DNA of 8,031 bases from Oopsacas minuta (Eukaryota > Animalia > Porifera): the NCBI GenBank assembly GCA_024704765.1, contig JAKMXF010000180.1:1-8031 (forward strand), written 5' to 3'. Position numbers and translations under genes: made by a program. The notes below the pieces were generated by a model, which saw nothing but the letters and a program-made list of their open reading frames with translations, did not search any database and was not told where the DNA came from. Below are positions 1,602-7,355 of the stretch, in pieces; position 1 is the first letter of the stretch; each line of letters starts with the position of its first letter.

Positions 1602-1675
1602 TACTTCCCAACCCCTTGAATAGAACCTAAATTAAAGCATTCTCTCAAATTAAACCCTAACTCAAATACTTAATA

Positions 1676-1946
1676 CTGTATACCCTCGCTAATCCGAACA
1701 GGGCCTAGAGCTTATACAATATTTGGAAAATTATTTAAAACGGAAAAACATAGCCGATTTATATCCAGTTCTACTACAGATCAATATCTAATACTATATT
1801 ACGCATGTCGGCCCCCATTACATCGTTTAGACAACTTTCGAAAGAGTCCTCCCAGATTCTATAGTATTGTTTCAATGCATTTCGCTAATCTGAAAGTATT
1901 ATTTTGCAATCGGAAGAGTGGTGTTCGGATTAGTGGGAGTATACTG
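1676..1946. mobile_element. Tc1/mariner (pogo-like) MITE, 271 bp
   Basis: 25-bp TIRs at 1676-1700 (ctgtataccctcgctaatccgaaca) and 1922-1946 (reverse complement cagtatactcccactaatccgaaca), 21/25 identical, with TA on both sides (1674-1675, 1947-1948). Confidence 0.8.
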
Positions 1947-2087
1947 TAGCCCGTTGATTGGACTGAAATGAATGATCACCACGGCTACTATTGACTATTG
2001 AGTAAATACTTGCCAAAAATATCATGTTAGCTATCACACAACTAATCTATGGACATTATTCAGAACAGAAAGTACGAAACTATAGTA

Positions 2088-2917
2088 TTATAATTTAGTT
2101 TGTATAGGTGCTGGAGTACAATTGATACCAGTTTCATTGTAACTCTTACTTTTGCAAGCTAGACTCCCATCACTTGCTTTGGATAGACAGATAAAACAAA
2201 AGTCTTTCTCGCAACTACAACAAGTCATTGTATTGCATTTACTTGTGTGTTCAATGAGAGTATGGCAATCTTTTCTGGGACAAGCTCTCCAAAGTGGAAT
2301 AGAAACAATCTTTCCGTTATAATCTTTAAAATCCTTTCTAGGAGAATTAATTAAAACTTCTATCTCCTCTCTCATGCAATTCACATTCCCACAAACTTTA
2401 TCACTGTTTGAATTATTCCAATCTCTCATACAATACCAGCAAAATGAGTAATAATTATTTAGTTTTCGAGGACAAATTAAGCAAAATACTTTAGGATTAT
2501 CTTTTCTTTCTCTTTGACAAAGAGTCTTGCACTGAGGGCATTGTTGGATGTCCTGGCTCTCATAGAAGTTTGTAGTTATAGCTGTTGTGAGAAATTGTTC
2601 TTCTTCTAGACTCGGTAATCCAAATTTGATTACATCCTGCATTGAAATTATTTTATCACAACCTGTGCAACTAATCTCAAACTTCATGTTACTGATATCT
2701 CCCCAAGCCTTACCCAGAATATCATCTGGGCATATGAAATGACCACATTTCATTCTCAGGCCAGAGGAATGAAAACATGTATTGCAAGTACCACTGGGAT
2801 GGGAAAATGAAACAGTCCGTTTTTCGTCTCTAAATTCATCAAACATCAATTCACACCCTCTAGCCTCAGTAAAAGAGACATTTTTCTGTTCAAAAGGGTT
2901 AACATCTGCCATAGTTT
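2088..2917 (-). CDS. RBR-family (RING1-IBR-RING2) E3 ubiquitin ligase, terminal coding exon (first in-exon ATG at 2912)
   Basis: 274-aa ORF. RING1-like C43/C46/C56-H58/C61/C82/C85; IBR C125/C128/C144/C147/C158/C161/C174; RING2 RACPRKDC...IEHTSKCNTMTCCSCEKDFCFICL matching the RBR IEKxxGCNHMxC...FCxxC pattern, with putative catalytic C226. Acceptor ttttctgattag| at 2918 and branch-like CTAAC at 2945-2941. Confidence 0.92.
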
Positions 2918-3002
2918 CTAATCAGAAAATACAATTACTAGTTAGAACTTTAAAGGAAACCTCAATTAAATAACCCTTTTGGTGTACCAATAGACTATTT
3001 TA

Positions 3003-3030
3003 CAGGATTGCCGTGGGAACAGAATTTCTA
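3003..3030 (+). mobile_element. hAT-like left terminal inverted repeat remnant
   Basis: caggattgccgtggg (3003-3017) matches the reverse complement of 4812-4826 (cagggttaccgtggg) at 13/15. CAGGG-type start is common in hAT TIRs. Confidence 0.4.
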
Positions 3031-3244
3031 CTCATTAACATGATCCACCTATATGCCAATGCAAAAAATTTCGGGACATATTTATTGCTGTTTTATGATA
3101 ATGAAGTATGGTCAAGCAATTACTGAAATATAAAATATTACTAGAAATTAGAGACTCGCTCTTCTTGAGTGCATAAGGCTATCAAGTAGGTACACTGATT
3201 CAGAATTTCGCACTTTTAAGTCTGTCATGAGTAAACTTATTGTA

Positions 3245-3560
3245 GTTTTATGAAAATGAATTATTCACATTGCGGAAATTTCAAAATATAGATAGAGAAT
3301 TGATTTTAATGGGTACATAAGGGTAAACACATGTATGTTGAATCCGAAAATGATATTAACCACCAAATATTATGAATACTTGTTGTACTGCTAATCGAGT
3401 ATACTTACTGATTCGGTTTAATATTTCAAGTTTGCTATATGTAACTTAGCGTTGGTTTTATGAATATAAATAAGGATAAATAGTTGAAATTTCAAAATAT
3501 CCATACTAGTAACTAGTTTTCAACGGGTACATAGGGTACACAAGTATTTTATTTCGAATT
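3245..3560. repeat. Diverged direct repeat, about 211 bp period (transposon-internal type)
   Basis: gaaatttcaaaatat at 3275-3289 and 3486-3500; gggtacata(a)gggta at 3311 and 3525; gttttatgaa precedes both copies. Confidence 0.65.
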
Positions 3561-3629
3561 TCGTAATTTCAAGGTTTCATATGTATACATATTTGCGAAT
3601 TAATAACATTTGTAATAATAGACTTTTGC

Positions 3630-3719
3630 TTAATTGGAGGCACAAAGTTCCGAGCGTAAGCGGAAACGAAGTGTTTGCAATCCGCGTAGCGCTAGCAAGC
3701 GAAGTGCGCTACTTGCTAA
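3630..3719 (+). mobile_element. Helitron-like 3' terminus (hairpins followed by CTRR|T)
   Basis: GC-rich hairpins gttcc-gagcgtaagc-ggaaac and gtagcgc...gcgctac / tagcaag...cttgcta around a gcgaag motif, ending CTAA|T at 3716-3720. Confidence 0.5.
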
Positions 3720-3882
3720 TAATAATATGTATGAAGCAAATTTAGTAATATCATAGAAAAAATTACAAAGGATTTGTCTGACCGTATTATGTGTAATAAC
3801 CTCAACAGTATGAAAAAATTTGAACATAAAACACAAGTTACGAGTATATATAAAACATTGATATAATTATAATGTAACATAG

Positions 3883-4083
3883 TCAGTAATATTTGTTACC
3901 ACCTGGTAGTCTAACCACCATAACAATACTTGCGCCACCACCTATTCCATAGTCTTCAAAGGTCATCACTTCTCCATCGCGAGAATTCTCTAGATCTTTA
4001 GAACCATACAGCAAACGTTGTTTGTCTACATCAATCCCGGTTGCTACTTTCACTTTCACTTTCAGTTCTGATATTTTTAAATT
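3883..4083 (-). CDS. Ubiquitin-like domain exon (NLKISELKVKVKVATGIDVDKQRLLYGSKDLENSRDGEVMTFEDYGIGGGASIVMVVRLPGG-NKYY*)
   Basis: Manual translation aligns to ubiquitin residues ~20-76 (GIxxDxQRLxYxxKxLE, TxxDYxI, VxRLxGG). Acceptor ttctctcgtctag| at 4084, phase 0. Stop TGA at 3885-3883 if unspliced. Absent from the ORF track because no start codon precedes it. Confidence 0.82.
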   Translation of the reverse strand, partial: NLKISELKVKVKVATGIDVDKQRLLYGSKDLENSRDGEVMTFEDYGIGGGASIVMVVRLPGGNKYY

Positions 4084-4172
4084 CTAGACGAGAGAACACA
4101 TTATTAATTATAGGTATTTAAAGCGATTTGGAGCAAAAACACATACAAATACATTATTACAGGAATAAAATA

Positions 4173-4368: not shown

Positions 4369-4527
4369 AGACCAATTTTTCTACTCAAGAGAGGTTCTTC
4401 CAGATGTCTGTGTGTCAGACTTTCGTACAGAGGAGGTTCTCTATCGCATATTTTTCGATGCCTTAGGTCCAGTAGCTCAGATACCTGCACCAAACAGAGA
4501 TGTAGCAAGCAGATTTCAATTGATCAG
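4369..4527 (+). CDS. Putative 159-nt symmetric (phase 2-2) internal exon of an unidentified gene
   Basis: Acceptor ttattattatattttag| at 4368, donor CAG|GTTAAC at 4528, GC higher than flanks, open frame DQFFYSREVLPDVCVSDFRTEEVLYRIFFDALGPVAQIPAPNRDVASRFQLI. A second plus-strand frame is also open. Confidence 0.35.
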
Positions 4528-4533
4528 GTTAAC

Positions 4534-4614
4534 CTTTACAAAATATATGGAGCCACCAAAGTTGGTCCGGTTGACTAATACTATTTGTATTGGCAGTGAA
4601 AATGGATTTTCCAT
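4534..4614 (-). CDS. Weak candidate first exon of the Ubl-RBR gene (MENPFSLPIQIVLVNRTNFGGSIYFVK)
   Basis: ATG at 4614-4612 and phase-0 donor AAG|GTTAAC at 4533 fit the phase-0 acceptor at 4084. IQIVLVN-turn-SIYFV loosely resembles the ubiquitin beta1-beta2 hairpin, but the start overlaps repeat DNA. Confidence 0.2.
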
Positions 4615-4826
4615 CGGTTTCCAATAGATATCCCATAGAGGAATTCCCATAGAAAGAAAATAATTCCCATAACGATTAACCTTGAAAAAACGAATAAATT
4701 CATCTCAAGAGAATGCACATGGCTTAGTACAGAGAAAACAGAAAAATGGTTTTCCCATATGGAAATTCTCATAGCAAGAAAATGATTTCCATTCCCATGG
4801 GAATTCCCATACCCACGGTAACCCTG
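4598..4826. mobile_element. hAT-like element right end or MITE with repeated ATTCCCAT subterminal motifs
   Basis: aattcccata at 4642 and 4662, further copies at 4752, 4791 and 4803; perfect 14-bp palindrome attcccatgggaat at 4791-4804; terminus cccacggtaaccctg at 4812-4826. No 8-bp TSD found. Confidence 0.6.
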
Positions 4827-4995
4827 GGATTTACCTGCAGCTTTCGTTTCTCTATATGTATTGTCTTCGACTTTCCCTCTAAACCAGAAATATAGATATT
4901 TTCCATTCTTCGAGAAGTGAAAATCTACATAAAAGACATAATGGAGAAATACCCATTATCTGTTAATTTTAGTAAAAATTCATGGTTATTAATGA

Positions 4996-5022
4996 CTAGC
5001 TTGCTTCGCTTGCTATGTCGCT
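4996..5022 (-). mobile_element. Helitron-like 3' terminus
   Basis: Minus strand reads gcgacatagcaagcgaagcaagCTAG|T and shares the exact 12-mer tagcaagcgaag with the end at 3693-3704. Confidence 0.45.
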
Positions 5023-5075
5023 GCCGATACCCCTGGTATAACCCAGTATTAAATAGCTAAATTTCATGATACTTT

Positions 5076-5600
5076 TAGTCCCTTAGCGACGGGATATACT
5101 CAGCACTACGTGCCTCGAGTTGAGATATTGAAGAAATTTCAATTTTTATTATCCATGGCCCATCTACATGATATTTACTTGGTCTTGAGTTGCTATATGG
5201 CTTTTGATCAGTATCCTGGGCACATCGTGCAAGGAGTATTATGAAATTCCCAAAATTTCTGAATTTAAACAATTCATGAATTTTTCGAATCGTCTTAATG
5301 ACGTGATACTCTCATGATGAATTAGCTTTTGGTGAAAATGACGTCAGGACATTTGGCACATTGAGGGTACCTGCGATTCAAATTTCAAAATACTATCATG
5401 TATATTGGCTGAGCAGTGGTTAATAATGTGATTTTTTGAAAATCCAAAAAGGTAACAATGACGTGATAATTTCGTCATAGGTGTGAACTTTGGCCCAAGA
5501 CTCGAAAGTGTCCGAGCCAGGCCCAAAATACCCCTGTACGCCAAAAATCACCCCTTGGGGTCTTCCAATTTCTTCAATTAATTCTTGATAAAATATTGCA
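5076..5600. repeat. Degenerate interspersed-repeat block with recurrent ATGACGT(G/C)A motifs, possibly Helitron/Helentron-related
   Basis: atgacgtgat at 5298 and 5458, atgacgtca at 5338, hairpin atgacg/cgtcat at 5458-5478, and a tttt|agtccc...gggatatact start. Boundaries uncertain. Confidence 0.35.
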
Positions 5601-6179
5601 ACACTATATTACGCACAGATGGCACATGGCGAGATCGGTTGAAAGATTATATGACTATAGCAGAAAGTAGGACAATAGCTTGCTATCATTTGTTGTTTAT
5701 GATATAGTTATGTTAAAATTGTTTGAAATCATCATAAAAACTGAGGTTACATCACTTTGGTGCCAGGTGCCAAGTGTGGCAGGATTTTTCAATACTTATG
5801 GCCAGGCAGGGTACATACAGATTAGTACTATAGATGTATTAGTTTTTGTTGCAGTACATTTTGCTAATTACATGAGTAAATTTACATTCTTGACTGTACA
5901 GTAGAAGTCTTTACCACTACCTATGCATGGTAAAATGCATTAAGGGGGTGGAAAGATAAAAACATGTCCAGCCTACAGACTGGTAGTGCAGTTTAGGGTT
6001 ATGTATTTTTGTTCTTTCAGGGGGGCACGCTCCCCTACCCTCAGTATAAATGCGGTAATGCACCGGATCCGACTGGATCCTGGATCTGATAAATATTTCG
6101 GGATATTCAATATTTTCGTCCTCTAATGTACTTCATATTCTATCTTCAAATCCTATGGATAAAATTCCGAATAATTATC

Positions 6180-6470
6180 CTACAATTACCCCTTGTATAA
6201 CTTCTGAAACGAAATCTCTAACATCAATTTAAATATGTGTAAAAAGGTGTGAAAATATGATAATTGATGTAGATATAAATTTGAAAATTTGAATTTTGGA
6301 ACCTACATACTCGATTACCCCTAACTAGCAGTAAAAACGAAATCTCTGGCATGATTTTGAATATTATGCAAAAAGGTGTGAAAATATGATTATTCATATG
6401 ATAAATCTGTGAATTTGTAACTTTCAGCTGAAAATCTCAAATTCGGACTCTACGCACTCAATTACCCCTG
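6180..6470. repeat. Diverged tandem repeat, about 129-147 bp unit, about 2.3 copies
   Basis: aaaaaggtgtgaaaatatgat exact at 6241 and 6370; aaacgaaatctct at 6207 and 6335; attacccct at 6185, 6314 and 6461. Confidence 0.8.
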
Positions 6471-6544
6471 ACAACATTTTGTCAAACAGGTGCAATGTCT
6501 CACTTTTGGTGCGGGAATTGGTTGAAATATAGTGGTAGAATTTT

Positions 6545-6574
6545 AGTGTTCCTTTTCGTTACGAACGTAACACT
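6545..6574. repeat. Imperfect hairpin following TTTT, possible Helentron/DINE-type terminus
   Basis: agtgtt...ttcgt-t-acgaa...aacact arms, plus an inner gttacg/cgtaac pair. Confidence 0.4.
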
Positions 6575-7024
6575 TCGGCCGTAATCGGTTAAACGCCAGG
6601 CATTGCAATGAAATCTGAAGAGTAATTAGGGTATACGTATATCCAAATATTTAAAATAATTACCTGAATTGTAATCGAAAATTCTAAGGAGATCTTAATC
6701 TGTAAAATGGGACTATTAAGGTAAGTAATAGTGCATATAAACCTCTTAAATAGCTTATAGAATTACTATGAAATATGAGACAGTTGCTTATTCACGAGAT
6801 TCATAGAAACTGCTAATTATAAATTCATATTCACTTCTATTCCCCATGAAATGTATAAGGTTATTGAAAAATGTTGCTCGAATCTTTCCTGTATAACAAT
6901 GGTTTCCAACCTCACACGATGAAACATATTGTGAGTTCAAAAGTATATAATGAATGTGCATGGTGTATATTATTCAAAATATTCAATAATCTCACTTGTA
7001 AGGGGTCGCGAATTTGTTGGAAAA

Positions 7025-7355
7025 TTTAAGTGGATCGCCGAACATTCGTTTGGGTATCACTGCTGTACAAGAATAAAAATTTTGCACAATTGGAACTATT
7101 GAGTAATTTTTTGAATCCTAATTGAACTAAGTTAGAGCCTATATCATATGATAATATTACAACAATTGGTAAACCCTCAAATCTGATAGGTCAATACATT
7201 TTGACACCTATCTCAAAGGGATTTTGAGATATCGCTTAGATCTTATAACATGTTCCTAGATTTATCACATTCCACAAATTTCAAGTTTGTAGCTCTTACC
7301 AGTCCTCAATCAATTCCGGACAAAAAACAAAAACATAGACGAAATATATAATAGA
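7025..7355 (-). mobile_element. Non-autonomous Helitron-like element, about 330 bp
   Basis: Minus-strand 5' end A|TCTATTATATA at 7356/7355; subterminal hairpin ccgaac-attc-gtttgg at 7038-7053; the CTRR 3' end is decayed. Confidence 0.55.

Follow-up and report, generated by a model that had tools for sequence, protein, structure and literature searches.

Does contig JAKMXF010000180.1 of the glass sponge Oopsacas minuta encode one protein, in which a ubiquitin-like (Ubl) domain is spliced to a RING1-IBR-RING2 (RBR) ubiquitin ligase, or does it encode two? An earlier note on this sequence favored a single protein: it described a Parkin-like Ubl-RBR ligase in which a 274-amino-acid (aa) open reading frame (ORF) is only the last exon, preceded by a hidden Ubl exon. 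The window that we analyzed is the entire 8,031-bp contig, and the features below are minus-strand features given on forward numbering. With a G+C content of 30-44% across the window, the sequence is AT-rich and eukaryotic. The 274-aa ORF is 100% identical to part of the O. minuta GenBank protein LOD99_11374 (399 aa). This model already uses the junction of position 3903 with 2917; thus, the Ubl exon described as hidden was in fact annotated. In our assessment, the locus probably consists of two adjacent same-strand genes that form one cassette, a Ubl modifier precursor and an RBR ligase, with an in-frame chimera of the two as a minor product. The best reading of the cassette is that its two proteins are a conjugatable ubiquitin-like modifier precursor and a presumed dedicated RBR E3 ligase.

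Four runs of one sample were studied as Logan contigs. Three of them (X1, X3, and X4) were even over exons and introns and thus DNA-like. X2 was the sole RNA run, and its contrast of more than 100-fold between exon and intron depth indicates that it behaves as RNA. The two genes comprise the following parts:

6664..6712, minus strand: 5′ untranslated region (UTR) exon of the Ubl gene; its 3′ boundary at 6664 is secure, and its 5′ end lies somewhere between about 6748 and 6712
4835..4924, minus strand: Ubl exon 1; acceptor AG 4926-4925, ATG 4906-4904, donor GT 4834-4833, phase 0
3883..4083, minus strand: Ubl exon 2, ending RLP-GG-NKYY-stop; Gly-Gly codons 3903-3898, tail 3897-3886, TGA 3885-3883
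3841..3882, minus strand: 3′ UTR of the Ubl mRNA; its 3′ end is placed near 3841-3870 from contigs, not raw reads
2918..3902, minus strand: spacer between the genes, 985 nt; removed as a GT..AG intron in the minor chimera, with CTAAC at 2945-2941 and AG at 2919-2918
2088..2912, minus strand: RBR ligase ORF, 274 aa, with its ATG at 2912; Pfam IBR (PF01485) matches at E 4.8e-8 in two stretches
2050..2087, minus strand: 3′ UTR of the ligase mRNA; AATAAT at 2060-2055, and a contig that ends at 2050 and continues into adapter letters

The first gene would consist of the 5′ UTR exon ending at 6664 and of exons 4924-4835 and 4083 to ~3850. Its product would be a 90-residue ubiquitin-like modifier precursor that ends in RLPGG and the four-residue tail NKYY. 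The second gene would be a single exon (2912-2088) encoding a 274-residue RBR ligase from its own ATG.

For the 5′ UTR exon, the depth in X2 was 979 at position 6703, 33 at 6645, and 2.5 in the bin 6749-6935. A contig end at 6664 continues as the reverse complement of 4924-4913, which indicates that this exon is spliced from 6664 to 4924. Both this exon and Ubl exon 1 had been overlooked in the earlier note. The coding part of exon 1 (4906-4835) comprises 24 codons that cover β1-β2 of the fold, MENIYISGLEGKSKTIHIEKRKLQ, followed by the donor GTAAAT; in LOD99_11374, exon 4924-4835 is translated throughout, as IFTSRR-MENIYISGLEGKSKTIHIEKRKLQ. A tblastn search showed that exon 1 is conserved in paralogous loci. 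The ubiquitin-fold exon that the note had recognized from 4083, on the same strand as the RBR ORF, is well founded: behind the acceptor AG at 4085-4084 the frame reads NLKISELK...VVRLPGGNKYY-stop, and this exon alone matches the Pfam ubiquitin profile PF00240 (E 4.8e-9, profile positions 20-71). The two exons together match the same profile at E 1.8e-9 over positions 8-71, which supports a β-grasp ubiquitin fold, and the best match in the PDB is ubiquitin.

The encoded protein resembles precursors of the ubiquitin/NEDD8/ISG15 type in its β-grasp fold and in the C-terminal R-L-x-G-G followed by a short dispensable tail. By eye, hydrophobic positions of the L8/I44/V70 type are kept. The protein is roughly 30% identical to ubiquitin by manual rather than computed alignment, carries two insertions in loops, counts 86 residues up to Gly-Gly, and has Pro in place of Arg74. 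It differs from such precursors in being encoded beside a presumed E3, to which it is fused in other phyla; its conjugation is a prediction. Trimming of the tail would expose the Gly-Gly of the modifier, which would then pass via an E1 and a UBE2J2-like E2, of the kind that adjoins sister cassettes, to the RING2 Cys of the ligase and from there to targets. The window contains no E2 gene, the contig being too short, and no E1 gene was found in the loci examined.

Is the second protein an RBR ligase in its own right? In an alignment of 36 paralogues, the RING1 ligands C43-x2-C46-x9-C56-x-H58-x2-C61-x2-D64-x17-C82-x2-C85 are invariant or at least 90% conserved, with Asp rather than Cys as the sixth zinc ligand. 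RING1 was not called in a Pfam search of the ORF. In the same alignment, the zinc ligands of IBR and RING2 are invariant, the catalytic-type Cys of RING2 (C226 in KCNTMTC) is at least 90% conserved, and the C-terminal motif C.PAPIQTKL is specific to the family. RING2 aligns to that of ARIH1 (1wd2; KCNTMTC versus GCNHMVC). An AlphaFold2 (AF2) model of the ligase (pLDDT 82, pTM 0.79) was matched by Foldseek to ARIH2 (7od1, E 2.4e-7) and to ARIH1, Parkin, HOIL-1, HOIP, and RNF216 over 230-270 columns, with a probability of ~1. Judged by its ligands, catalytic-type Cys, and modeled fold, the protein is an RBR E3, for which thioester transfer is predicted. It is close to minimal RBRs of the RNF144 type in size and in its bare RING1-IBR-RING2 arrangement, and among named clusters of the ESM Atlas they are its nearest (score 0.95). 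It differs from them in lacking a C-terminal membrane helix, in the Asp at the sixth RING1 position, and in having N-terminal (NPF...RTV.F.HP) and C-terminal (PAPIQTKL) motifs of its own family.

The statement in the earlier note that RING0 and Ariadne domains are missing was borne out. Only 42 residues precede the first conserved Cys, C43, and these contain no zinc-ligand cluster, hence no RING0; an Ariadne domain and a membrane helix are likewise lacking. The comparison with Parkin, on the other hand, is an analogy only. As in Parkin (PRKN) and HOIL-1L (RBCK1), a ubiquitin-like domain is associated with RING1-IBR-RING2, but the sponge ligase has no RING0, NZF, or REP and is 14-18% identical to these proteins. 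In addition, the sponge Ubl ends in a Gly-Gly predicted to be conjugatable and is mostly a separate protein, so that Ubl and RBR are not normally one polypeptide. Parkin's Ubl is not known to end in a conjugatable Gly-Gly.

The DNA runs X3 and X4 carry a second ligase allele, with at least 18 differing sites listed in 2088-2912, 14 of them non-synonymous and 4 synonymous. This allele keeps all zinc ligands, and the Ubl protein is unchanged. These differences suggest relaxed or diversifying selection on the ligase.

Are the two genes joined in RNA? The sites proposed in the earlier note are present: a branch point CTAAC, the acceptor AG five nucleotides before the ligase ATG, and two phase-1 donors (GT at 3902-3901 and 3899-3898), both within the Gly-Gly codons. 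Joining 3903 to 2917 reads in frame as ...VVRLP-ET-MADVNPF. In X2, the joint of 2917 with 3903 was found at a depth of 235 in one contig, with GT..AG on the minus strand. For the second donor (3900), no joint was present among the X2 joints listed. The predicted junction is thus seen in RNA for one of its two donors. The depth of X2 along the locus was as follows:

Intron 1: 10-88
Exon 1: 4,500-6,800
Ubl exon 2, bin 3944-4130: 30,511
Ubl exon 2, position 3934: 11,138
Position 3892, 11 nt past the donor, in the tail codons: 6,978
Positions 3879 and 3861: about 2,000 (1,866-2,247)
Single unspliced unitig 2920-3870: 354
Ligase exon: 2,000-17,000

The depth of 6,978 inside the tail indicates that most transcripts are unspliced there. 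Most Ubl transcripts pass the donor into the tail and stop codon and end within about 15-45 nt, where the low-depth unitig starts at 3870 and the depth falls to 354. Read-through into the spacer accounts for a few per cent of the Ubl transcripts, and the spliced chimera for roughly 2-5% of the depth of either exon. At the other end of the ligase, the depth decreases from 785 at 2094 to 114 in the bin 1887-2073. In the reading that we prefer, a few per cent of gene-1 transcripts would read through the poly(A) site, and in part of these a splice would then link 3903, within the first Gly codon, to the AG preceding the ligase ATG, giving an in-frame product without Gly-Gly.

The alternative put forward in the earlier note, and also embodied in the GenBank model, has 3903 (or 3900) spliced to 2917 to yield one functional Ubl-RING1-IBR-RING2 protein; the stop after Gly-Gly would then be intronic and the 274-aa ORF only a last exon. 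Such a joint does exist in RNA and keeps the frame. Its depth of 235, however, has to be set against ~6,978 for unspliced RNA past the donor and 2,000-17,000 for the ligase exon.

How, then, does most ligase mRNA begin? The ligase exon is more than 10 times deeper than read-through and chimera together; therefore, most ligase mRNA must gain its 5′ end in another way. It could start at its own promoter or be formed by spliced-leader trans-splicing. A TATA-like TATTTAA at 2972-2966 and a unitig break at 2920/2950 fit an own promoter. Trans-splicing is central to an operon-like explanation, in which both genes would share one precursor, the ligase mRNA would be freed by a spliced leader joined at 2918 (or at the AG 2949-2948), and the chimera would be a by-product, the two proteins again being separate. 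Spliced-leader trans-splicing has been reported in hexactinellids (PMC7986045; PMC10282587), and the locus offers several features that suit it: a read-through precursor crosses the spacer (at a depth of 354, some 17 times that of the background in intron 1), the acceptor at 2918 is functional in cis, the ligase exon is far deeper than everything upstream, and the order Ubl then ligase on the same strand recurs in all 11 pairs described below. No leader was seen, however, among the loose ends of X2 that were listed. In A. vastus, only 4% of long reads carry a leader (PMC10282587), and operons are unreported in hexactinellids (PMC7986045). Long spacers of 446-3,125 nt separate the genes, no AG occurs in the 54 nt nearest the ligase ATG of pair L004a, and TATTTAA with the unitig break fits an own start near 2950 equally well. 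Two Logan contigs with sponge ligase ORFs (L014 and L015) look genomic and gave no leader. On balance, we regard an operon-like origin of the ligase mRNA as unlikely.

If the cassette encodes two proteins, its paralogues should tell the same story. We compared 12 Ubl copies, 11 of them with a ligase after them; these 11 pairs lie in nine loci from O. minuta and several ENA/Logan assemblies containing glass-sponge DNA, and their parts were mapped by tblastn. A protein search returned 59 glass-sponge paralogues, in line with the lineage-expanded family suspected in the earlier note. Every intact ligase copy examined (11/11 pairs) is preceded by a Ubl on the same strand, with the first Ubl exon found in 10 of the 11. 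Divergence of the Ubl and of the ligase is correlated (Mantel r 0.73, p 1e-4), which indicates that the pair duplicates as a unit.

The ends of the two proteins are preserved. In 11 of the 12 Ubl copies the sequence closes with R-[LV]-x-G-G, a tail of 1-7 residues, and a stop; the tails are NKYY, NRYFH, YVS, YPPS, YLSS, Q, NRKIL, NFDIFII, M, KY, and VTKCN, while the remaining copy ends in GD-T. The two Gly codons vary (GGTGGT, GGGGGT, GGAGGT, GGTGGC, GGCGGA, GGTGGG), and some copies have lost one or both GT donors with Gly-Gly kept. This indicates that the protein motif is maintained, not the GT donors. Tails of at most seven residues in all 11 copies have a P of about 6e-5 against the stop spacing in the flanking spacers (median 10 codons), a value that treats the copies as independent and therefore somewhat overstates the significance. 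In the second allele, seen in X3 and X4, the Ubl protein is the same, and the tail has lost 1 nt, and a single-nucleotide polymorphism further on makes a new stop, giving NNITD-stop. On the ligase side, the initiator Met stands at the homologous position in all ligase copies. In the annotation of three further O. minuta pairs, Ubl proteins of 87-91 aa and ligases of 249-279 aa come from separate genes.

These observations bear directly on the single protein. A retained Gly-Gly, tail, and stop, despite codon change, and a conserved initiator Met speak against it, as does the separate annotation of sister pairs. Six of the 11 pairs, among them the three of the four O. minuta pairs that have donors, could be fused in frame through a phase-1 donor in a Gly codon and an AG close to the ATG; the other 5 could not. 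Since one-third would be expected by chance, 6/11 is not clearly above chance, and we do not use the frame as support. Relatives in other phyla are single Ubl-RBR chains, in agreement with one protein; these natural fusions retain Gly-Gly, whereas the sponge splice deletes it. Taken together, we consider that the window normally yields a single Ubl-RBR protein to be quite improbable, and the claim that the 274-aa ORF is only a last exon does not hold.

We also evaluated an AG close to the ligase ATG as a possible conserved signal. Such an AG lies within 23 nt of the ATG in 10 of the 11 pairs, but by our estimate about two thirds would be expected by chance in such base composition, and this candidate was rejected.

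Could the chimera be more than a by-product? The two Gly-Gly donors might act as a regulated switch that chooses between a free modifier with a free ligase and a non-cleavable fusion of altered activity, under intramolecular control in the style of Parkin, with a share that varies with stage or stress. Both donors fall exactly in the Gly-Gly codons, so that splicing and conjugatability are mutually exclusive, and the frame is kept in the window and in the O. minuta loci L001 and L007; the position of the AG differs by 3 nt between the window and L001. Against this, only about 3% of transcripts use the splice (in one RNA run), donors are absent or the frame is wrong in five of the 11 pairs, the remaining six do not clearly exceed the third expected by chance, and GGT is a common Gly codon in an AT-rich genome. 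A switch of this kind thus appears very improbable.

Where does such a pair of genes come from? A profile built from the ligase alignment was run against 1.84 billion representatives and gave 2,433 matches at E 1e-3 or better. Word-index protein searches had returned glass-sponge proteins only, and the fused relatives came solely from this exhaustive profile search. In 38 of the 144 top new representatives, the sponge Ubl profile also matches N-terminally, in one chain with the RBR. These chains read ...LRLPGG[S/G/A], then a linker of 15-40 aa, then the RBR. Named members occur in Acropora, Ruditapes, Mercenaria, Mya, and Branchiostoma. Pfam ubiquitin and IBR were both found in every fused chain tested except that of Mya, which gave IBR only and whose Ubl was recognized via the sponge Ubl profile.

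For Acropora millepora (XP_044178914.1), Ruditapes philippinarum (XP_060565936.1), and Branchiostoma lanceolatum (XP_066282921.1), the RBR is homologous to that of the sponge, with profile E-values of 1e-28 to 1e-61. The fused family has in common with the sponge proteins a homologous Ubl (IF/YxxGLxGK... and ...LVLRLPGG) and the motif A-P/A-I/V-Q-T near the C-terminal end of the ligase. In amphioxus, the fused gene has a phase-0 intron in the same β2-α1 loop of the Ubl as in the sponge, and its genes likewise form tandem paralogues with a neighboring UQ_con gene. The sponge E2 gave no match in the amphioxus locus at E 1e-3, so the neighboring amphioxus E2 is of another type. The difference lies in the joint between the two parts. 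In the fused proteins, Ubl, Gly-Gly, an acidic linker, and ligase are one chain (in amphioxus, Gly-Gly, linker, and the start of RING1 share one exon), whereas the sponge has a stop after the tail and an ATG for the ligase. The fused family keeps Gly-Gly at the joint, and the chimeric splice in the window deletes one or both Gly.

The earlier note was right that Ubl part and RBR ligase belong together; the in-frame splice is present in RNA, and relatives in other phyla are single chains. The link between modifier and ligase is real and ancient, and the core intuition of the note holds. Corals, clams, and amphioxus encode modifier, Gly-Gly, linker, and ligase as one chain in a gene of which the sponge pair would be a split version. 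A quick maximum-likelihood tree placed the split forms of glass sponges in one group (99% SH-aLRT), with all fused forms outside. This single group is consistent with one fission or with one fusion. The cassette belongs to an apparently undescribed animal family, split in its sponge form, and is not a Parkin relative. A literature search, in which coverage of the literature was incomplete, returned no description of a Ubl-GlyGly-RBR family.

Several points weigh against two normally separate proteins. The wider family does use the fused architecture. Within O. minuta, an AG in the phase needed for fusion stands 2-5 nt ahead of the ATG in three of the four pairs (window, L001, and L007), and its displacement by exactly 3 nt between the window and L001 hints at possible maintenance of the frame there. 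The depths are k-mer depths of Logan contigs, a poor measure of RNA level that cannot show transcript ends. The chimera joint rests on a single contig among the joints listed, and with one RNA sample a rise of the chimera at particular stages or under stress may occur. Finally, the 5′ end of the main ligase mRNA is not seen in the X2 contigs.

What follows for the GenBank model? The O. minuta annotation was produced with BRAKER/Augustus using RNA-seq hints from TopHat (PMC10280926). LOD99_11374 alone is merged among the O. minuta pairs, presumably from an intron hint provided by the minor junction. Its beginning lies upstream of the Ubl gene:

6996..7045, minus strand: first coding exon of LOD99_11374; the X2 depth is about 8 in the bin 6936-7122 and 2.5 in 6749-6935

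Residues 1-39 of the model have no Pfam match. As 7045-6996 is nearly without RNA support (~8 versus thousands in real exons) and contributes no domain, these 39 residues are probably spurious. LOD99_11374 is thus probably a conjoined-gene artefact of a rare read-through splice with a spurious N-terminus, which matters for counts of sponge E3 ligases.

The surroundings of the paralogous cassettes add a further component. Sister loci of O. minuta adjoin UQ_con genes; in one the order is E2, Ubl, ligase, and in another Ubl, ligase, and an E2-containing gene. Human UBE2J2 is matched by the E2 of a sister cassette at E 6.5e-51. In locus L007 (4662-5390), the UBE2J2-like E2 ends in a Cys-rich tail (..RLCFCLCCIKSDFYI), in place of the membrane helix of UBE2J2; this tail may be a lipid anchor. 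Locus L008 of O. minuta contains UBE2J2-like E2 genes at 1613-3636 and 9193-11217 that are annotated as 648 and 674 aa, with long C-terminal extensions. The Ubl of the same locus (6015-6642, 8001-8750 for the pair) ends in RLPGDT without Gly-Gly, and the paired ligase lacks its first ~25 residues. On a 1.74-Mb contig, three intact Ubl-ligase units form a tandem array that also holds a ligase copy broken over three frames (L004, 11637-12433); this copy looks like a decaying paralogue. In L009, transposase-like helix-turn-helix ORFs (7198-8300) occur inside the Ubl-ligase spacer of 3,125 nt; large insertions are thus tolerated within the pair, a point against an operon with tight spacing. A gene for a coiled coil with NHL repeats lies less than 10 kb from Ubl-ligase units in two glass-sponge loci (L005, 18461-19636, minus strand; L006, 19041-20360, minus strand) and in amphioxus (L013, 21853-23106, plus strand). 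The sponge and amphioxus proteins are 26% identical (E 9e-16), and this neighbor may reflect conserved linkage or a partner of the system.

The window itself also contains repeats. Segments 5253-5626, 6001-6187, 6375-6561, and 1700-1886 have 15 to 280 times the depth of single-copy sequence in the DNA runs (72 in X1), which marks these parts of the Ubl introns and flanks as interspersed repeats of high copy number. The paralogous locus L001 has similar sequence in its Ubl intron (about 2440-2700). Two inverted-repeat pairs (1674-1700/1922-1948 and 7495-7524/7709-7738; arms 27-30 nt, gap 184-221 nt) look like miniature transposable elements. An Rfam search of the window gave no match.

What does the locus mean for the biology of this family? 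The Ubl-GlyGly-RBR family is, to all appearance, undescribed; the junction of 3903 with 2917 was already present in LOD99_11374. The dozens of tandem paralogues, the many differences between ligase alleles, and the linkage to a UBE2J2-like E2 resemble fast-evolving, possibly defense-related systems such as ISG15, although this is speculation. In its broadest form, the finding would amount to an unrecognized animal Ubl conjugation pathway, with a modifier in cis with its RBR E3 (and a UBE2J2-like E2 in sponges), present in most phyla as a self-resolving modifier-GlyGly-ligase precursor, split and massively duplicated in glass sponges, and with the O. minuta splice as a switch that makes the modifier a permanent regulatory domain; in that full form we hold it to be rather improbable. 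The split sponge cassette is a natural experiment, as modifier and ligase, two proteins in the sponge, form a single chain in corals, clams, and amphioxus. That the sponge has two proteins and preserves the Gly-Gly end argues for the fused chains being precursors that are cut at Gly-Gly, and for a Ubl that truly serves as a conjugatable tag and has an RBR E3 dedicated to it.

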